Sequence record: NC_061444.1
Direction: 5' to 3' (one strand)
DNA length: 64,000 nt
The notes beneath the pieces are model-generated. The model did not search any database. It had not been told where the DNA came from and saw only the letters and a list, made by a program, of their open reading frames with translations. Each line of letters begins with the position of its first letter. Position 1 is the stretch's first letter. Below are positions 38,028 through 63,440 of the stretch, piece by piece. The translations under genes were made by a program, and so were the position numbers.

Positions 38028-38064
38028 GATCATCCTCTACTGGGTCTAGTAATCATATCGAGTG

Positions 38065-38072
38065 AAAATTAG
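38065..38072 (-). promoter_or_regulatory. Putative phage promoter motif B (CTAATTT)
   Basis: CTAATTTT, 38 nt upstream of start 38027. Confidence 0.5.
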
Positions 38073-38139
38073 CGACTAAGGCGTGTTTTGTTCGATATAG
38101 TGTGCGTACTGACTTTACAAATTTAGGACGCTAGAATGC

Positions 38140-38168
38140 AAAAAGGGGCAGCCGAAGCCACCCCTTTT
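38140..38168 (-). terminator. Rho-independent terminator (repeated family)
   Basis: GGGGTGGC-TTCG-GCTGCCCC-TTTTT. Confidence 0.8.
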
Positions 38169-38199
38169 TGTTTCGTAATTGTCTTACCGACCAGGTCGA

Positions 38200-43893: not shown

Positions 43894-44403
43894 TTACTCC
43901 TTAATCATCTTGACGCGCGTATGATCAAATATACCAAAGGTAGGAACATCATGGTGCTCACCCTCATTACCTTTGATAGAATCATAGCCCGCCAGTTTTA
44001 GGATTTTACTGATCTCTGTATACTCGTCCCACCACATGTACACTCGCTTGTGTTGATTAGCAGGTATGTGTTTGTTCAGAGCATCCAGACGACCGACTAG
44101 TGTTATCGCTTCATCTTTGCCAACCAGATGCAACTGAAAGGCTTCCATGATTAGCTGTTTCACTCGTCTATAAATCTCAGCGAACCGTACTTCCGTCCAC
44201 AGAGAACGGAATTTCAGGCTGGCATAGCGACCTGGGTCCGCATGAAACTTGTAGAGGCGCCCACCTTCCGCATACTTCTCAGCATACGCACGATCTGGTG
44301 TTACCCAAGTCATGTGTTGCTTCTTAGCATGTTCATCTGACCAGTCTTCTGCAAGACCGCGATAGTAGATTGTAGGCGCACTTAGGCTGACGAAGATCTG
44401 CAA
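43894..44403 (-). CDS. ADP-ribosyltransferase-fold (ART-PolyVal-like) protein with shared N-terminal peptide
   Basis: TTG start, MQIFVSLSA; YYRG, WVTPDRAYAEKYA, GRLY, GYDSI, FGIFD..RVK. Confidence 0.5.
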   Translation of the reverse strand: MQIFVSLSAPTIYYRGLAEDWSDEHAKKQHMTWVTPDRAYAEKYAEGGRLYKFHADPGRYASLKFRSLWTEVRFAEIYRRVKQLIMEAFQLHLVGKDEAITLVGRLDALNKHIPANQHKRVYMWWDEYTEISKILKLAGYDSIKGNEGEHHDVPTFGIFDHTRVKMIKE

Positions 44404-53828: not shown

Positions 53829-54380
53829 TCACACAGGCTGTATGGTGAGAATTGTGTACTGACCTTCCTTACGTGTGCCAACGACTTTGAACTTATAGCC
53901 CACAGGGTAGATCCATTCTTTCTCTTCCTCTACACCCTCAATGAGATCGTCACGCCATTCTTCGTCACCAGAAAAGGCTTCTTCGAGAGGGATAGACAGG
54001 ATGTAATCTTTCAGGCGCTGGTGGTAGTTAAAGCCCTTGAGTTTGGGCGATGGTGCAGGTAAGAGTTCGAGCACAACATGAACCTCTGCGAACTTCTTGG
54101 CGATAGCCTTATCCTCAGAGAATGACATGTAACGATTCAGACGAGCGTAACCCTGTTCTTCCAGTTGCTCATTGATCCGGCTTTGCTCTTGTCGATAGAT
54201 GCCGCGATACAATGGCTTCTTAGGGACTTCGGAATACTTTCTGATAAGTTCATTCAAATCATCATCACCACCAAACGCAGAGATGATCTGAGACTTGTCG
54301 TGAATAAGACCCATCAGAACTTCTTGTTGTTCTTCTGTGTACTTAGGTACTTTTGCGCTAAGACTAACGTGAATTTCCAT
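53829..54380 (-). CDS. ADP-ribosyltransferase (R-S-E class, Alt/Mod-like) with shared N-terminal peptide
   Basis: MEIHVSLSA; LYRG, YMSFSED..IAKKFA, EEKEWIYPVGYKFKVV. Confidence 0.75.
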   Translation of the reverse strand: MEIHVSLSAKVPKYTEEQQEVLMGLIHDKSQIISAFGGDDDLNELIRKYSEVPKKPLYRGIYRQEQSRINEQLEEQGYARLNRYMSFSEDKAIAKKFAEVHVVLELLPAPSPKLKGFNYHQRLKDYILSIPLEEAFSGDEEWRDDLIEGVEEEKEWIYPVGYKFKVVGTRKEGQYTILTIQPV

Positions 54381-54397
54381 ACGTGCTCCGTAAAATG

Positions 54398-54424
54398 AAA
54401 AAGGGCAGCCGAAGCCACCCTTTT
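54398..54424 (-). terminator. Rho-independent terminator (repeated family)
   Basis: GGGTGGC-TTCG-GCTGCCC-TTTTT. Confidence 0.8.
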
Positions 54425-54511
54425 GTAGATGGCGCGCTATGCACCCGACTGTTAAGTCTACTACGGTTATTTTACCTCGCAGTAGTCAGCGAGGAGATTG
54501 GGATCACCTCC

Positions 54512-56487: not shown

Positions 56488-56496
56488 ATTTCAGAC

Positions 56497-56532
56497 AAAA
56501 AGAAAGGACCACATCCAAAATGGAGGGTCCTT
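56497..56532 (-). terminator. Rho-independent terminator
   Basis: AAGGACC/GGTCCTT plus TCCA/TGGA stem followed by TCTTTTT. Confidence 0.6.
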
Positions 56533-56585
56533 ATGGTGTTACAATAAGTTTTGGATGGTAACGCATCGGCAGTGGGCGCTGTCGA

Positions 56586-56783
56586 TTAGGCAAAGCACAT
56601 TTCCCATCGCGGTACGACGCGGAAGAAGTGCTTAAAGTTGGACGGTGGGTTGTTCTTGATTGATTCAAGTTTCTGTTCCACTACGTCATAATCTTTTATG
56701 CCACTCTCTACGGTGTGAGTGGTGAATGTACCGTCAGCCTGAATCAGGTCGGCGACAACACGGTAGCTTGGTTTACGAAGCAT
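56586..56783 (-). CDS. Small hypothetical protein
   Basis: 65 aa, AGGAGA RBS. Confidence 0.65.
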   Translation of the reverse strand: MLRKPSYRVVADLIQADGTFTTHTVESGIKDYDVVEQKLESIKNNPPSNFKHFFRVVPRWEMCFA

Positions 56784-56822
56784 CTATTCTCCTGTGCTAA
56801 AATTTCTCGTTCTTCTGAATTA

Positions 56823-56831
56823 TGTTTACAG
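56823..56831 (-). promoter_or_regulatory. Motif A variant (CTGTAAACA)
   Basis: One mismatch; 40 nt upstream of start 56783. Confidence 0.35.
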
Positions 56832-56876
56832 TTTACTGCGAGTAGTCACACAAGAATAAAGTCAGAAAAGTCTTAA

Positions 56877-57205
56877 ACTCCAATAGGCTCTCAGAGAAAA
56901 CATATTGGAGTCCACCCTCGCCAGATGACGGTCTAGCCAGGGCTTTCTCCCCGTGTCTTTCAAATGCACCGACACGGTAGCGCTCGCGGTCTTACGCTCT
57001 CTGCGGCAGCGAACGTTTCGGCAGGTAGCGGAGTTCGCAGCCTAGAGCAGCCGCTTTTCGGCCATAGCGATAACGCGGTGTTACGCTACTTGGCCTAGGG
57101 TGACTCAGGGCCGAGTCTGTACAAAAAAGAGTTCGGCCTATCCCCAAATTCGGCAAAAGAAACAGGCCGAACTAAACAGTCAGCGCAAACTCCGTATGCA
57201 CTGTT
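56877..57205 (-). ncRNA. Candidate structured non-coding RNA (unknown family)
   Basis: ORF-free GC-rich island with at least 7 stems; several extend by G.U pairs only on the minus strand; motif B at 57217-57224 upstream. Confidence 0.45.
57123..57173 (-). terminator. Long hairpin with U-tract (terminator or attenuator)
   Basis: AGTTCGGCCT/AGGCCGAACT 10-bp stem, extended by G.U pairs, then CTTTTTT. Confidence 0.65.
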
Positions 57206-57216
57206 TTGTACTGTTA

Positions 57217-57224
57217 TAAATTAG
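57217..57224 (-). promoter_or_regulatory. Putative phage promoter motif B (CTAATTT)
   Basis: CTAATTTATAACAG with no CDS downstream for about 430 nt. Confidence 0.45.
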
Positions 57225-57251
57225 AAACATTCCGAAATATTCAGACAATTC

Positions 57252-57839
57252 TTAGTTCAGCATTGGACGCAGCTTTGACAAGAAATGTTGTCTGTCGAAT
57301 GATTCAATTCGGTGAGGATGATCGATGTGCAGGTTCCATCCTTTGGTAAACAGCAACACGTTACGCGGCAGTACCAGTTGATCACCAACGCGAGTGAACT
57401 TGTCACGCACAGCAGTAACAGGATTGTCGTCAACAAGAATCCAAGTACCTTCCCCGTACTTCTCATTGAGGTAAGCAATCTTGTCAGGATGTTGGCGACT
57501 GTCCAGCACGTCGATGTGATCGAACAACGACAGGTGTTTCTCCAGAGCCTTACGTGTGTTGCGTTCACCCTTAGCATGATAGCCACGATGCGTACAAATG
57601 CCGACGCTGAATCCTTCGCGCACCAGGAACGCCACAGTCTGGATGAAGTAGTCACGCATGTTGGCTTCTAACATGAAGCGACCATCTTCCAGCATATCGA
57701 CAAAAGGCTGGTGGCCGTTTTCAGGAGTGATGTAAGTATCTGTCCCAGGGTAGATTCCCCAGTTCATTAGATAACACAACATGAAGTTGTGCGTATCAAA
57801 TGCCGTGTCGTCCATGTCGAAGAAAATATGTTTGATCAT
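57252..57839 (-). CDS. HAD-superfamily 5'(3')-deoxyribonucleotidase-like phosphatase
   Basis: IFFDMDDT (DxD motif I), ICTHRG, K in DKIAY, ILVDDNP (motif IV). Confidence 0.82.
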   Translation of the reverse strand: MIKHIFFDMDDTAFDTHNFMLCYLMNWGIYPGTDTYITPENGHQPFVDMLEDGRFMLEANMRDYFIQTVAFLVREGFSVGICTHRGYHAKGERNTRKALEKHLSLFDHIDVLDSRQHPDKIAYLNEKYGEGTWILVDDNPVTAVRDKFTRVGDQLVLPRNVLLFTKGWNLHIDHPHRIESFDRQHFLSKLRPMLN

Positions 57840-63053: not shown

Positions 63054-63100
63054 TGCCTTTTCATACCCATATCTCGATCCTTGCTTCTTTTTCTATAGGT

Positions 63101-63109
63101 TCTTTACAG
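63101..63109 (-). promoter_or_regulatory. Motif A variant (CTGTAAAGA)
   Basis: One mismatch; 48 nt upstream of start 63053. Confidence 0.35.
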
Positions 63110-63440
63110 AATCAACTTATCAACCCTTACAAACCTTGTACCGTCAACTATCCTCGCTTGGCTCGCTCTGGATGGCGAGGTCAGGACGGCTAGGTACGGC
63201 TTGGAACTGATCGATAACATACAGGGCTATAGTACACTGCGGTAAAAAAGACCTGACCTGCGAAAAACGCTATGATCTGCGTGTCTACAGTGGTCAAAAT
63301 AGCCCTATATTGAAAAAATAGCCGCAAAAAGATCTCGCCGATTCCGTGTAATTTGGGCGTGTTTTTTGAACCCCCACCCACGGAGCGCTTAAAACGCAAA
63401 TCTACCCAAAATCGGTTAATCTTTATCCAGATATTTTGAG

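Follow-up and report, generated by a model that had tools for sequence, protein, structure and literature searches.

The 64-kb window analyzed here, which is the whole stretch of DNA under study and derives from the 266-kb genome of the jumbo phage pEa_SNUABM_32 of Erwinia (genus Alexandravirus), contains a previously undescribed gene for a structured non-coding RNA that matches no known RNA family. We regard this gene as real; its transcription is inferred, and expression data are lacking. The predicted body of the RNA comprises 337 nt on the minus strand, from helix P1 to the end of hairpin P8 (56875–57211), and was delimited by folding, conservation, and covariation, with both ends being inferred. 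It is located in an unannotated gap of 468 nt (56784–57251). Of the 25 gaps in the window with a length of 30 nt or more, this is the largest, and the second largest intergenic gap measures only 172 nt. The GC content of the gap region is 0.58–0.61 compared to approximately 0.45 in the surroundings, and no conserved ORF is present, in agreement with the original prediction of an ORF-free GC-rich island in this position.

The flanking genes are also located on the minus strand. The upstream neighbor gp215 (57252–57839) encodes a HAD-like phosphatase of 195 aa, which matches PHROG 415 "polynucleotide kinase" with E = 1.3e-13 and whose relatives are annotated as phosphatase or deoxyribonucleotidase; no sequence match was found in the PDB. 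The synteny of gp215 and the RNA is kept in all six genera in which the RNA occurs. The downstream neighbor gp214 (56586–56783) encodes a protein of 65 aa without assigned function and has its own Shine-Dalgarno sequence and ATG, both conserved among relatives. An AlphaFold model of this protein (pLDDT 87) showed no recognizable RNA-binding fold and gave no significant fold match in the PDB (best Foldseek E-value 0.25); the weak matches include small phage inhibitor proteins. A gp214 homologue occurs in SNUABM_5, but it is not located beside the RNA in JA11 (Salmondvirus). The RNA locus lies next to replication genes (the clamp loader gene); GGCC and GTAC form palindromes within it, and the motif TTKTCTGA occurs three times locally. 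The direct repeats TAAGAATTGTCTGA and TAAGACTTTTCTGA flanking the RNA might have been taken as an insertion scar, but are absent from Rivsvirus and Salmondvirus.

Fold, sense strand, and non-coding character

The minimum free energy calculated for the minus strand was -145.8 kcal/mol (z = -5.6 relative to shuffled controls), whereas the plus strand reached a z-score of -2.9. In five homologues the sense strand gave z-scores between -5.3 and -8.1, and in the short JA11 form -3.5. The sense strand always folded better than the antisense strand, by 17–30 kcal/mol in six homologues. Many conserved pairs are G·U pairs on the minus strand only, an asymmetry originally noted for several of the stems; on the other strand and in cruciform DNA they would become A·C mismatches.

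A homologous gap is present in each of 46 phage records, which belong to the genera Alexandra-, Sasquatch-, Snu-, Rivs-, Yoloswag-, and Salmondvirus, and also in several contigs from metagenomes. In none of the 46 deposited genomes is the RNA annotated. In pEa_SNUABM_5, a small ORF on the opposite strand is annotated over it. When 28 distinct homologues were aligned with a covariance model, 93.7% of the cells at paired positions were indeed paired, compared to 30–51% with slid partners, and 34 of the 59 pairs were changed on both sides; none of 500 shuffles reached the observed values. Since the covariation counts derive in part from a model-fitted alignment and from related sequences, the results of the shuffles should not be read as probabilities. 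Conservation of the RNA in close relatives exceeds that of the coding DNA on its flanks: the identity of the RNA to that of pEa_SNUABM_32 is 98.8% in SNUABM_17, 95.0% in AD1, and 91.4% in phB78, and that of gp215 in the same comparisons is 86.9, 84.4, and 79.6%, respectively. Across the six genera the loops and one helix base are invariant, while the stems vary. The original prediction would have been refuted by a lack of structural conservation in relatives or by a folding energy no better than that of dinucleotide-shuffled controls; it survived on both counts, with compensatory changes across six genera and energies well beyond the controls.

The possibility of a protein-coding gene or small ORF was rejected, as stop-free stretches differ in frame and place among 21 relatives. 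Gaps in the alignment of these relatives comprise 218 one-base and 64 two-base runs versus 28 three-base runs. The criteria for a structured non-coding RNA, namely compensatory substitutions across diverged homologues and a folding energy beyond that of shuffles on one strand, are met. Thus, the fold is under selection, the minus strand is the sense strand, and the RNA sequence is non-coding.

Architecture of the RNA

All seven stems listed in the original prediction were found when read off the window sequence, and they could be assigned to elements of the RNA. The prediction did not include hairpin hp1, the long-range helix P1, helix P4, and the pseudoknot. The 5′ module (57119–57211, minus strand; alignment A1) consists of P1 enclosing the hairpins hp1 and hp2 and was found in five genera, but is missing in Salmondvirus. 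P1 is formed by GUACAAAA (57211–57204) and UUUUGUAC (57126–57119); since both strands are invariant, covariation is uninformative on this helix either way. Hairpin hp1 (57181–57203) carries an invariant GGAGU in its loop and is 100% paired, with three pairs changed on both sides. Hairpin hp2 (57130–57173, including the listed stem 57130–57139/57164–57173) is 92% paired, and six of its pairs are changed on both sides. Its covarying stem of 16 bp is followed by C and a run of six U (57123–57128, a T6 run on the minus strand DNA; 6–12 U in relatives), which gives it a terminator-like look. A consensus terminator scanner made no call at this position, which we attribute to the 12-nt loop of hp2 exceeding the scanner limit of 8 nt. 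The other terminators of the phage are short GC stems with tetraloops.

The 5′ module is followed by two hairpins. P2 (57102–57117) is a small hairpin formed by GACUC and GAGUC (57102–57106/57113–57117), whose sequence is invariant, so that it has no covariation support. RNAalifold proposed an alternative in which the P2 loop pairs with GGCCGA. For P3 (57060–57095, listed stem 57060–57074/57080–57095), per-sequence folds agree across clades despite changed stem sequences, and the pair count in a MAFFT alignment gave only partial support. The apical loop of P3 holds the invariant sequence GUAACACCGCG (57074–57084); phage SNUABM_52 shows a 10-nt duplication of this loop motif.

A core of approximately 180 nt is common to all six genera and comprises P4 with GUAAGAC, P5, the pseudoknot with GGAG, P7, and P8. 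The covariance model R1 matched positions 56874–57062 with 201 bits and revealed no second copy of the RNA in the window. The P4–P5 domain (56986–57054) was defined from the covariance-model alignment and clade variants. Its closing helix P4 consists of GCGG/CCGC, CU/AG, and GCUCU/AGAGC; the Snuvirus counterpart is GCGAGG/CCUCGC, that of JA11 is GGCGAG/CUCGCC, and that of a metagenome relative is GAACGAG/CUCGUUC. The universally conserved GUAAGAC forms an internal loop within P4 (56989–56995). P5 is a variable stem (57033–57042/57005–57014, with GCGAAC/GTTCGC at 57009–57014/57033–57038) and carries GCUACC in its loop (57024–57029). Helices 1–5, which make up this domain, are 92.6–95.2% paired, and 12 of their 20 pairs are changed on both sides.

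The P4–P5 domain is followed by an H-type pseudoknot (56951–56983, minus strand) with two stems and an A-rich loop 3. In stem A, GCGC (56980–56983) is paired with GUGC (56966–56969), and in stem B, which corresponds to one of the stems listed originally, CCGUGUC (56971–56977) with GACACGG (56951–56957). Stem A is absent from the covariance model, but it is 92% paired and two of its pairs are changed on both sides; for stem B this holds true for six of the seven pairs. A blind search recovered the same pseudoknot topology in 12 homologues, in every clade and from different sequences, with seven sequence versions of stem A/A′ and eight of stem B/B′. Shuffled sequences matched the size of the observed pseudoknot in 0–43 of 1000 trials per sequence.

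The single-stranded linker GGAGAAAG after the pseudoknot (56943–56950; alignments A2 and A4, the latter being the version without reverse-strand matches to the palindromic P8) contains a GGAG that is kept in nearly all homologues. It is followed by hairpin P7 (56914–56943, comprising the stem listed near 56914–56942), with eight of the 11 pairs in helices 8 and 9 changed on both sides and the invariant motif GACCGUCAUC in its loop (56924–56933). All clades retain a hairpin whose loop is ACCGUCAU or CCGACA, which is found at a different position in Rivsvirus and Yoloswagvirus. The terminal hairpin P8 (56875–56913), to which the listed stem ACTCCAATA/TATTGGAGT (56877–56885/56903–56911) belongs, corresponds to helix 10 and is 97% paired; eight of its pairs never vary and six are changed on both sides. 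Its base, ACUCCAA/UUGGAGU, shows no variation among the 28 homologues, whereas its tip is variable and covarying. A U-rich stretch is present 3′ of P8. The motif ACCG(U/C) occurs at three places in the Alexandravirus RNA, and CCGUC-type loops at three places in the Rivsvirus RNA.

Relation to known RNA families and distribution

The original prediction had found no match to the hallmarks of tmRNA, RNase P, SRP, tRNA, hammerhead, or introns and had proposed a search of Rfam. Scans of Rfam 15 with seven homologues, at gathering and permissive thresholds, assigned the RNA to no family; together with ARAGORN, which detected neither tRNA nor tmRNA genes in the 64-kb window, they confirmed this first impression. 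The 4227 families of Rfam 15 include RNase P, tmRNA, SRP, 6S, introns, ribozymes, and riboswitches, and the scan also took in the GOLLD/ROOL/HEARO, CsrB/Rsm, and pRNA models. At the gathering level there were no matches in the whole window, and when the gap and the seven homologous loci were scanned permissively, with E up to 10 or 5, nothing consistent emerged inside the RNA. The lone permissive match was ctRNA_pT181 in AD1 (E = 5.1; 25.6 bits versus a gathering threshold of 56), which was not repeated elsewhere. A group I or II intron was rejected, as the flanking genes are complete (gp215 ends with TAA and gp214 has its own start signals) and no intron model matched. Complements of the GUAACACCGCG and GACCGUCAUC loops are not enriched in the window, which gave no indication of antisense targets. 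Full-text searches of the literature did not find a description of the RNA.

The RNA resembles GOLLD, ROOL, HEARO, OLE, and raiA in being encoded by a phage in a GC-rich, ORF-free intergenic island without a function evident from the context, and in having many helices with compensatory changes along with invariant loops and junctions. It differs from them in matching no Rfam family, in its smaller size (approximately 215–340 nt), in the absence of adjacent tRNA genes (there are none in the window), and in its confinement to one lineage, the jumbo phages of Erwinia and Dickeya. Erwinia and Dickeya hosts use the RsmA/RsmB system, and with CsrB, RsmB, and RsmZ the RNA shares several hairpins and junctions showing a repeated short motif, as well as single-stranded GGA(G) in the hp1 loop and in the linker after the pseudoknot. 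However, the repeated motif is ACCG(U/C) rather than GGA, the core is pseudoknotted instead of forming a simple string of hairpins, and the CsrB, RsmY, and RsmZ models of Rfam did not match. A function as CsrA/RsmA sponge was rejected: five GGA in approximately 340 nt correspond to the chance level (about five), and the CsrB/Rsm models were negative. Like the pRNA of phi29-type phages, the RNA is phage-encoded, non-coding, and stably folded, has its own (here predicted) promoter, and within a phage lineage retains its shape more than its sequence, but it matches no Rfam pRNA model and is located away from packaging genes.

The RNA appears to be restricted to this lineage within the data searched. 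A host or plasmid origin found no support, as a blastn search with the RNA gave no match in 5,426 E. coli genomes or in 72,556 plasmids. When loci preselected by DNA patterns from IMG/VR (two patterns), JGI metagenomes (one), and 185,579 species genomes (one) were screened with R1, which was applied to these loci and not to whole jumbo phage genomes, only the same phage lineage and no bacterial genome was found. Pseudomonas phage Lu11 has neither a gap nor an R1 match beside the clamp loader gene, and in Proteus phage 10 and Serratia phage KpHz_2 there is no R1 match beside the gp215 homologues.

Transcription signals and possible function

Directly upstream of the RNA lies the promoter-like motif B (CTAATTT, 57218–57224, minus strand), which had been described as pointing into the island. 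We confirmed this and found nine matches in the window, all on the minus strand, six of them within the 4% of the window that is non-coding (binomial P = 3e-7). TAATTT (57218–57223) is invariant in 21 aligned relatives, and motif B is present upstream of the RNA in all clades, including SNUABM_5, Yoloswag, and the JA11-type phages, in which its distance from the upstream stop codon is different. The predicted transcription start is located approximately 7 nt after motif B, at the G of GUAC (57211). A consensus scan identified no sigma-70 promoter in front of the RNA; reading of the sequence shows TTGTCT-17-TCTAAT as a possible weak one. A second promoter-like motif, motif A (CTGTAAA, 56825–56831, minus strand), is located between the RNA and gp214, outside the RNA. 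It has 14 matches, all on the minus strand and eight of them intergenic (P = 1.5e-8), and the record of Lu11 labels the same sequence as "putative middle/late promoter".

In JA11, JA29, and a metagenome relative, the RNA is followed by a covarying GC hairpin with a T7–T9 run, and motif A then precedes the clamp loader gene. In Salmondvirus, the RNA is placed between its own CTAATTT and its own strong terminator, which marks it as a separate transcription unit, independent and with its own terminator, as far as promoter- and terminator-like signals can establish this without expression data. No strong terminator after P8 was found in the other five genera, in which the transcript may continue into gp214. 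Since in these genera hp2 and 6–12 U precede the core, the full-length RNA would require read-through. No transcriptome of these phages was found in the searchable literature, and the evidence for a transcript consists of promoter- and terminator-like signals only.

The original prediction of an undescribed non-coding RNA or leader held in its first part, with the Salmondvirus core insulated by its own motif and terminator, while the leader is less supported. As a cis-acting leader of gp214 and the clamp loader gene, the RNA would act as a sensor of a protein or small molecule and thereby regulate read-through or translation, with hp2 and the U run as attenuator or with P8 switchable via pairing of ACUCC with GGAG(U). 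Indeed, the order of promoter motif, terminator-like hairpin, structured RNA, and genes on the same strand resembles HK022 put, attenuators, and riboswitches, as does the location in an extended array of genes on one strand that contains numerous intrinsic terminators; the usual layout of riboswitches, a complex pseudoknotted fold followed by a hairpin, was also counted for the leader. The lack of a strong terminator after P8 in five genera is in line with it, and ACUCC could pair alternatively with GGAG(U), which is found in the loop of hp1, behind the pseudoknot, and on the 3′ side of P8. However, the RNA is several times larger than such cis-acting elements. In Salmondvirus the strong terminator and the fresh, separate motif A insulate the clamp loader gene from the RNA; motif A is also present between the RNA and gp214 in Alexandravirus, and the downstream genes thus have their own promoter-like motifs. 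Moreover, the conserved core is located downstream of the supposed attenuator rather than upstream, no antiterminator pairing is conserved (the hp2/P3 alternative of the window is lost in Y3), and no Rfam riboswitch model matched. We therefore consider a leader unlikely, without dismissing it.

Somewhat less probable still is that the locus yields two products, an Hfq-type small RNA of approximately 85–90 nt (hp1 with the GGAGU loop, the A/U-rich spacer, and hp2 as terminator) and a core RNA with a different role formed by read-through or processing. The 5′ module is built like an enterobacterial small RNA, in that the promoter motif is followed by a stem-loop whose loop is conserved, a spacer rich in U, and a hairpin with at least six U, and Salmondvirus, in which the promoter motif directly precedes the core, shows that the two parts are separable in evolution. 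Nevertheless, neither the GUAC behind the U run nor the GACUCGGC that comes next varies, and the pairing of this GUAC with the 5′ end in P1 suggests a constraint on the read-through form; furthermore, the core is not separated from hp2 by a promoter motif. A ribozyme or self-processing RNA with a catalytic fold around the pseudoknot and the invariant GUAAGAC and GGAG junctions is very doubtful: 8–10 helices, a pseudoknot, and invariant junctions are within the range of known ribozymes and large orphan RNAs, but no Rfam ribozyme, group I/II intron, or RNase P model matched in seven homologues at E up to 10, no gene is interrupted (gp214 having its own start signals), and a conserved candidate cleavage site was not identified. 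A DNA-level element (replication origin, packaging or protein-binding site) or a non-functional GC-rich remnant can scarcely be upheld despite the adjoining replication genes, the palindromes, and the repeated TTKTCTGA, as the G·U pairs are confined to the minus strand, the sense strand has the folding advantage given above, compensatory changes and a pseudoknot are unexpected for a double-stranded DNA site, there are no iterons, AT-rich unwinding region, or skew change, and the conservation of the RNA above that of neighboring coding DNA argues against a remnant.

Our tentative proposal, for which the evidence is indirect and to which we give somewhat less than an even chance, is that the RNA acts in trans as a folded scaffold or decoy recognized by protein; no partner has been identified. 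This evidence comprises the invariance of the loops and of one helix base across six genera with varying stems, the repeated ACCG(U/C) and CCGUC-type motifs, and the lack of enrichment of loop complements in the window. Transcription of the minus strand would run from approximately 57211 to 56875, both ends being predicted, and most likely starts a few bases after the phage-specific CTAATTT element, which may be recognized by sigma-like factors that this phage group itself encodes. The 5′ end would fold as a three-way junction of P1, hp1, and hp2 with the U run, followed by P2 and P3 and then the core. In the five genera with this module, hp2 and the U run might end some transcripts as an RNA of approximately 85–90 nt, the rest reading into the core. 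Protein contacts would be likely at the ACCG-type loops, GUAAGAC, GCUACC, GGAG, and the invariant P8 base, although the repeated loop motifs could serve tertiary contacts instead. The gp214 protein is disfavored as partner, as no RNA-binding fold was seen and its gene is not adjacent in Salmondvirus.

RNAs of large size and intricate fold in which pseudoknots are conserved and loops invariant are rarely found, and many of them proved to be ribozymes, riboswitches, or cores of protein machines. The RNA described here is kept across a whole lineage of 255–268 kb phages of the fire-blight and soft-rot pathogens Erwinia and Dickeya. These phages are under development for biocontrol, and for most of their genes a function has yet to be assigned. 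The family is now defined by a covariance model, a secondary-structure model, and clear boundaries as a directly testable RNA, and it is a further candidate for the small group of complex orphan RNAs of viruses. Its newness refers to the absence of a matching RNA family; no such claim is made for the mechanism. It is conceivable, though on present evidence improbable, that the RNA is a subunit of a phage ribonucleoprotein, or catalytic, in a role unknown for phage RNA, for instance as a decoy or scaffold expressed late and catching a host or phage protein via the ACCG-type loops and the pseudoknotted core. If this were true, the RNA would represent a new functional class of viral RNA, beyond a new family.

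Locus and architecture of the predicted RNA

In phage pEa_SNUABM_32 (NC_061444, Alexandravirus, 265,891 bp), of which bases 124001-188000 form the window, all 74 annotated window genes are tightly packed on the minus strand. The predicted structured RNA (minus strand, ~57211 to ~56875, 337 nt, ends inferred) lies in a gap of 468 nt (56784-57251), the largest of 25 gaps of at least 30 nt, the runner-up having 172 nt. Further long intergenic regions are located at 38028-38199 (172 nt), 63054-63189 (136 nt), 54381-54511 (131 nt) and 44314-44403 (90 nt), some of them without an obvious terminator or promoter motif. The upstream neighbor of the RNA, gp215 (57252-57839), is a HAD-like phosphatase matching PHROG 415 (E = 1.3e-13), and the annotations of its relatives name a phosphatase, deoxyribonucleotidase or polynucleotide kinase. 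On the downstream side follow gp214 (65 aa, 56586-56783) and the clamp loader gene. A fold search with the predicted gp214 model (pLDDT 87; strand-strand-helix-helix-strand) gave no significant match, so that no partner protein is in hand. gp214 is confined to these phages; in fold it bears only a weak, non-significant resemblance to small phage inhibitor proteins (Foldseek E = 0.4-0.6), namely the uracil-DNA-glycosylase inhibitor p56 of phi29 and one chain from a type I-C CRISPR-Cas3 complex. A hairpin with a U-rich tail at 56500-56556 (minus strand), 3' of gp214, is probably the gp214 terminator. gp211 (53829-54380) has a weak Pfam match to DRAT (dinitrogenase reductase ADP-ribosyltransferase; E = 4.6e-5, 23.2 bits, under the cut-off of 25) and could, on this sub-threshold match, be an ADP-ribosyltransferase-like protein.

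The original prediction of an ORF-free, GC-rich island was borne out, with a GC content of 0.58-0.61 in 56900-57100 versus ~0.45 nearby and no conserved frame among 21 relatives. A protein-coding gap was rejected because stop-free stretches vary in frame and place among these relatives and gap runs of one or two bases (218 and 64) greatly outnumber those of three (28).

Per-sequence folds of the 21 relatives gave a single shared architecture despite differing stem sequences, and all seven stems proposed earlier were found where they had been placed. On the minus strand, the RNA consists of P1 (57211-57204/57126-57119), hp1 (57203-57181) with an invariant GGAGU in its loop, hp2 (57173-57130) followed by U6 at 57128-57123, P2 (57117-57102), P3 (57095-57060, loop GUAACACCGCG), P4 (57054-57044/57000-56986) with GUAAGAC at 56995-56989, P5 (57042-57005) with GCUACC in its loop, a pseudoknot of stems A (56983-56980/56969-56966) and B (56977-56971/56957-56951), the linker GGAGAAAG, P7 (56943-56914, loop ACCGUCAU) and P8 (56913-56875). 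In a MAFFT alignment of the relatives, the length of the U run behind hp2 ranges between 6 and 12 U even in close relatives, and the P3 loop of pEp_SNUABM_52 contains a tandem duplication of 10 nt, GUAACACCGC (equivalent of 57074-57084); both look like slippage polymorphisms tolerated by the RNA.

Distribution, covariation and strand

Sensitive blastn detected the gap in 46 phage records (Alexandravirus, Sasquatchvirus Y3, Snuvirus), none of which is annotated over it. tblastn via the upstream gene revealed syntenic gaps of 539 nt in Rivsvirus pEa_SNUABM_5 and of 342 nt in Salmondvirus JA11. Yoloswag (259,700 bp), JA29 and several metagenome contigs (71-268 kb) were obtained from pattern scans. 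All six genera have in common the upstream CTAATT(T/A), P4 containing GUAAGAC, the pseudoknot, whose third loop is A-rich, GGAG, a hairpin bearing a ACCGUCAU or CCGACA loop, and P8 with the invariant base ACUCCAA/UUGGAGU. The 5' module and the GCUACC loop are each present in five genera; P3 is limited to Alexandra-, Sasquatch- and Snuvirus. At ~215 nt, the form in Salmondvirus is shorter. Among members of Alexandravirus, conservation of the RNA exceeds that of the neighboring gp215 coding DNA: identities to six other phages were 98.8, 95.0, 95.6, 93.5, 91.4 and 90.5% for the RNA and, in the same order, 86.9, 84.4, 87.1, 85.4, 79.6 and 78.6% for gp215. In pEa_SNUABM_5, the strand opposite to the RNA carries, within the homologous region, an annotated 41-aa 'hypothetical protein' (MPK73_gp214, L048 3786-3911); it is probably a spurious gene call, since the RNA structure is conserved there.

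The RNA sequence was established as non-coding and lineage-specific. No bacterial copy was found when pattern matches from 185,579 species genomes were screened with a covariance model, and blastn against E. coli genomes and plasmids gave no match. It is missing from jumbo phages further afield: Pseudomonas phage Lu11 has neither the gap nor a covariance-model match near its clamp loader gene, nor is there such a match near the gp215 homologues of Proteus phage 10 and Serratia phage KpHz_2. The range of the RNA thus seems limited to one Erwinia/Dickeya jumbo-phage lineage.

The analysis of compensatory changes demonstrated selection on the RNA fold. RNAalifold identified such changes at 24 pairs. 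When 28 distinct homologues were aligned to a covariance model of the core (the ~180-nt P4-P8 part, pseudoknot omitted), 93.7% of the cells held standard pairs versus 30-51% with partners slid by 1-3 columns, and none of 500 column shuffles matched any of five measures. Pairs changed on both sides amounted to 34 of 59, which met the call of the original prediction for structural conservation in relatives. These counts are qualified by an alignment fitted to nested helices and by the relatedness of the sequences. Pseudoknot stem A, although absent from the model, nevertheless showed 92% pairing, and two of its pairs had changed on both sides. When the best H-type pseudoknot in the stretch from GUAAGAC to GGAG was sought blind, an identical topology emerged in 12 homologues, and shuffled segments attained the observed size in 0-43 per 1000 trials per sequence. 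Stems A/A' and B/B' read GCGCU/GGUGC and CCGUGUC/GACACGG in the window, ACGU/ACGU and UCCUGCACU/AGUGCAGGG in Y3, AGCGC/GCGCU and CCGCACG/UGUGCGG in Snuvirus, GGGCGCC/GGCGCCU and CCCUC/GAGGG in SNUABM_5, GGGCGCG/CGCGCCU and CCCUC/GAGGG in Yoloswag, GGUGCG/CGCACU and CCCGC/GCGGG in JA11, and GGUGUG/CGCACC and CCCAC/GUGGG in a metagenome relative. P4 varies by compensated insertion, being GCGG/CCGC in most phages, GCGAGG/CCUCGC in Snuvirus, GGCGAG/CUCGCC in JA11 and GAACGAG/CUCGUUC in one relative. Covariation in the 5' module is seen for hp1 and hp2; P1 and P2 are invariant and hence still unproven, and support for P3 in the MAFFT alignment is only partial.

The minus strand was established as the sense strand. 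Numerous conserved pairs are G.U in the minus-strand sense only, an asymmetry already noted from the single sequence, which settles the strand and speaks against a hairpin at the level of DNA. Region 56860-57225 folded with -145.8 kcal/mol (z = -5.6) as minus-strand RNA and with -123.8 kcal/mol (z = -2.9) as plus-strand RNA. Folding no better than dinucleotide shuffles would have refuted the prediction; in a separate shuffle test on the predicted RNAs of six phages, sense z-scores ranged from -3.5 to -8.1 (sense and antisense: SNUABM_32 -5.3 and -2.6, Alexandra -8.1 and -3.3, Y3 -6.7 and -3.4, SNUABM_7 -4.9 and -1.6, SNUABM_5 -6.5 and -5.9, JA11 -3.5 and -1.3), the sense strand being more stable by 17-30 kcal/mol in all six.

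Transcription signals and boundaries

Two short motifs recur on the gene strand only, mostly within the non-coding 4% of the window: CTAATTT (nine matches, six intergenic, P = 3e-7), with minus-strand copies at 57224, 48819, 47878, 38945, 38072 and 34461, and CTGTAAA (14 matches, eight intergenic, P = 1.5e-8), as CTGTAAA(T/C)A for example with its first base at 63109, 56831, 56487, 53320, 41553, 40099, 32734 and 23109 (minus strand). The promoter motif predicted upstream of the island corresponds to the strand-specific, intergenic-enriched CTAATTT at 57224-57218, which would place the start near 57211, where P1 begins. The CTGTAAA copy at 56831-56825 sits between the RNA and gp214. Because this motif is identical to a 'putative middle/late promoter' annotated in the Lu11 record, this promoter class seems, as far as sequence can tell, common to a wide jumbo-phage group. 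Phages of this group encode one or more sigma-70-like factors of their own (PMC7412058). Other genes preceded by CTAATTT include the endolysin gene and some close to the head-tail connector. Judged from sequence alone, CTAATTT may stand for another temporal class than CTGTAAA. A further motif, TT(G/T)TCTGA, has seven matches across the whole window, three of them (56491-56498, 56862-56869 and 57241-57248, minus strand) in three consecutive intergenic regions within 800 nt. Two of these three belong to longer near-repeats, TAAGAATTGTCTGA and TAAGACTTTTCTGA, present on either side of the RNA in Alexandra-, Sasquatch- and Snuvirus but absent in Rivsvirus and Salmondvirus. The motif might be a regulator site.

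In JA11, JA29 and a metagenome relative, a covarying GC hairpin with a T7-T9 run is located ~45 nt 3' of P8, followed by CTGTAAAT and the clamp loader gene. Here the RNA is a self-contained unit of promoter motif, RNA and terminator, and independent boundaries are thus established in one genus. In the genera other than Salmondvirus, the terminator-like hp2 is internal to the unit and P8 is not followed by a strong terminator, so that full-length RNA depends on read-through and may run on into gp214. That the RNA is a cis-acting leader or switch, as the original prediction also allowed, is possible, if unlikely when set beside the Salmondvirus unit. We likewise regard as rather doubtful that the locus yields two products, a short small RNA and the core.

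Nature and possible function of the RNA

No match to the 4227 families of Rfam 15 was obtained anywhere in the window at gathering thresholds, permissive thresholds gave nothing consistent in the gap or seven homologous loci, and ARAGORN detected no tRNA or tmRNA, in agreement with the earlier failure to assign a known class. The sole permissive match near the RNA, SorX at the 56500-56556 hairpin (E = 1, far under threshold), was taken for a chance match to a terminator shape. A gene-interrupting element was rejected as the RNA does not interrupt a gene, and a CsrB-type sponge because GGA motifs show no enrichment. Nor does the window have an excess of sequences complementary to the invariant loops. 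Full-text searches turned up no publication about the RNA or about transcriptomes of these phages.

It is very likely that the locus specifies a real structured RNA, and the proposal of an undescribed phage ncRNA was upheld by the fold conserved in six genera and by the boundaries in Salmondvirus. A ribozyme is improbable, and a DNA-level element or remnant, against which the one-sided G.U pairs speak, is scarcely credible. The reading we favor, tentatively and with an inferred mode of action, is a trans-acting RNA recognised by protein, as a scaffold or decoy. It rests on loops, junctions and one helix base that are invariant across six genera while the stems drift, on the repeated ACCG-type loops and on the insulation from downstream genes in Salmondvirus. 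The invariant elements would be the parts recognised by the protein, and the repeated loops could provide contacts for such a role.
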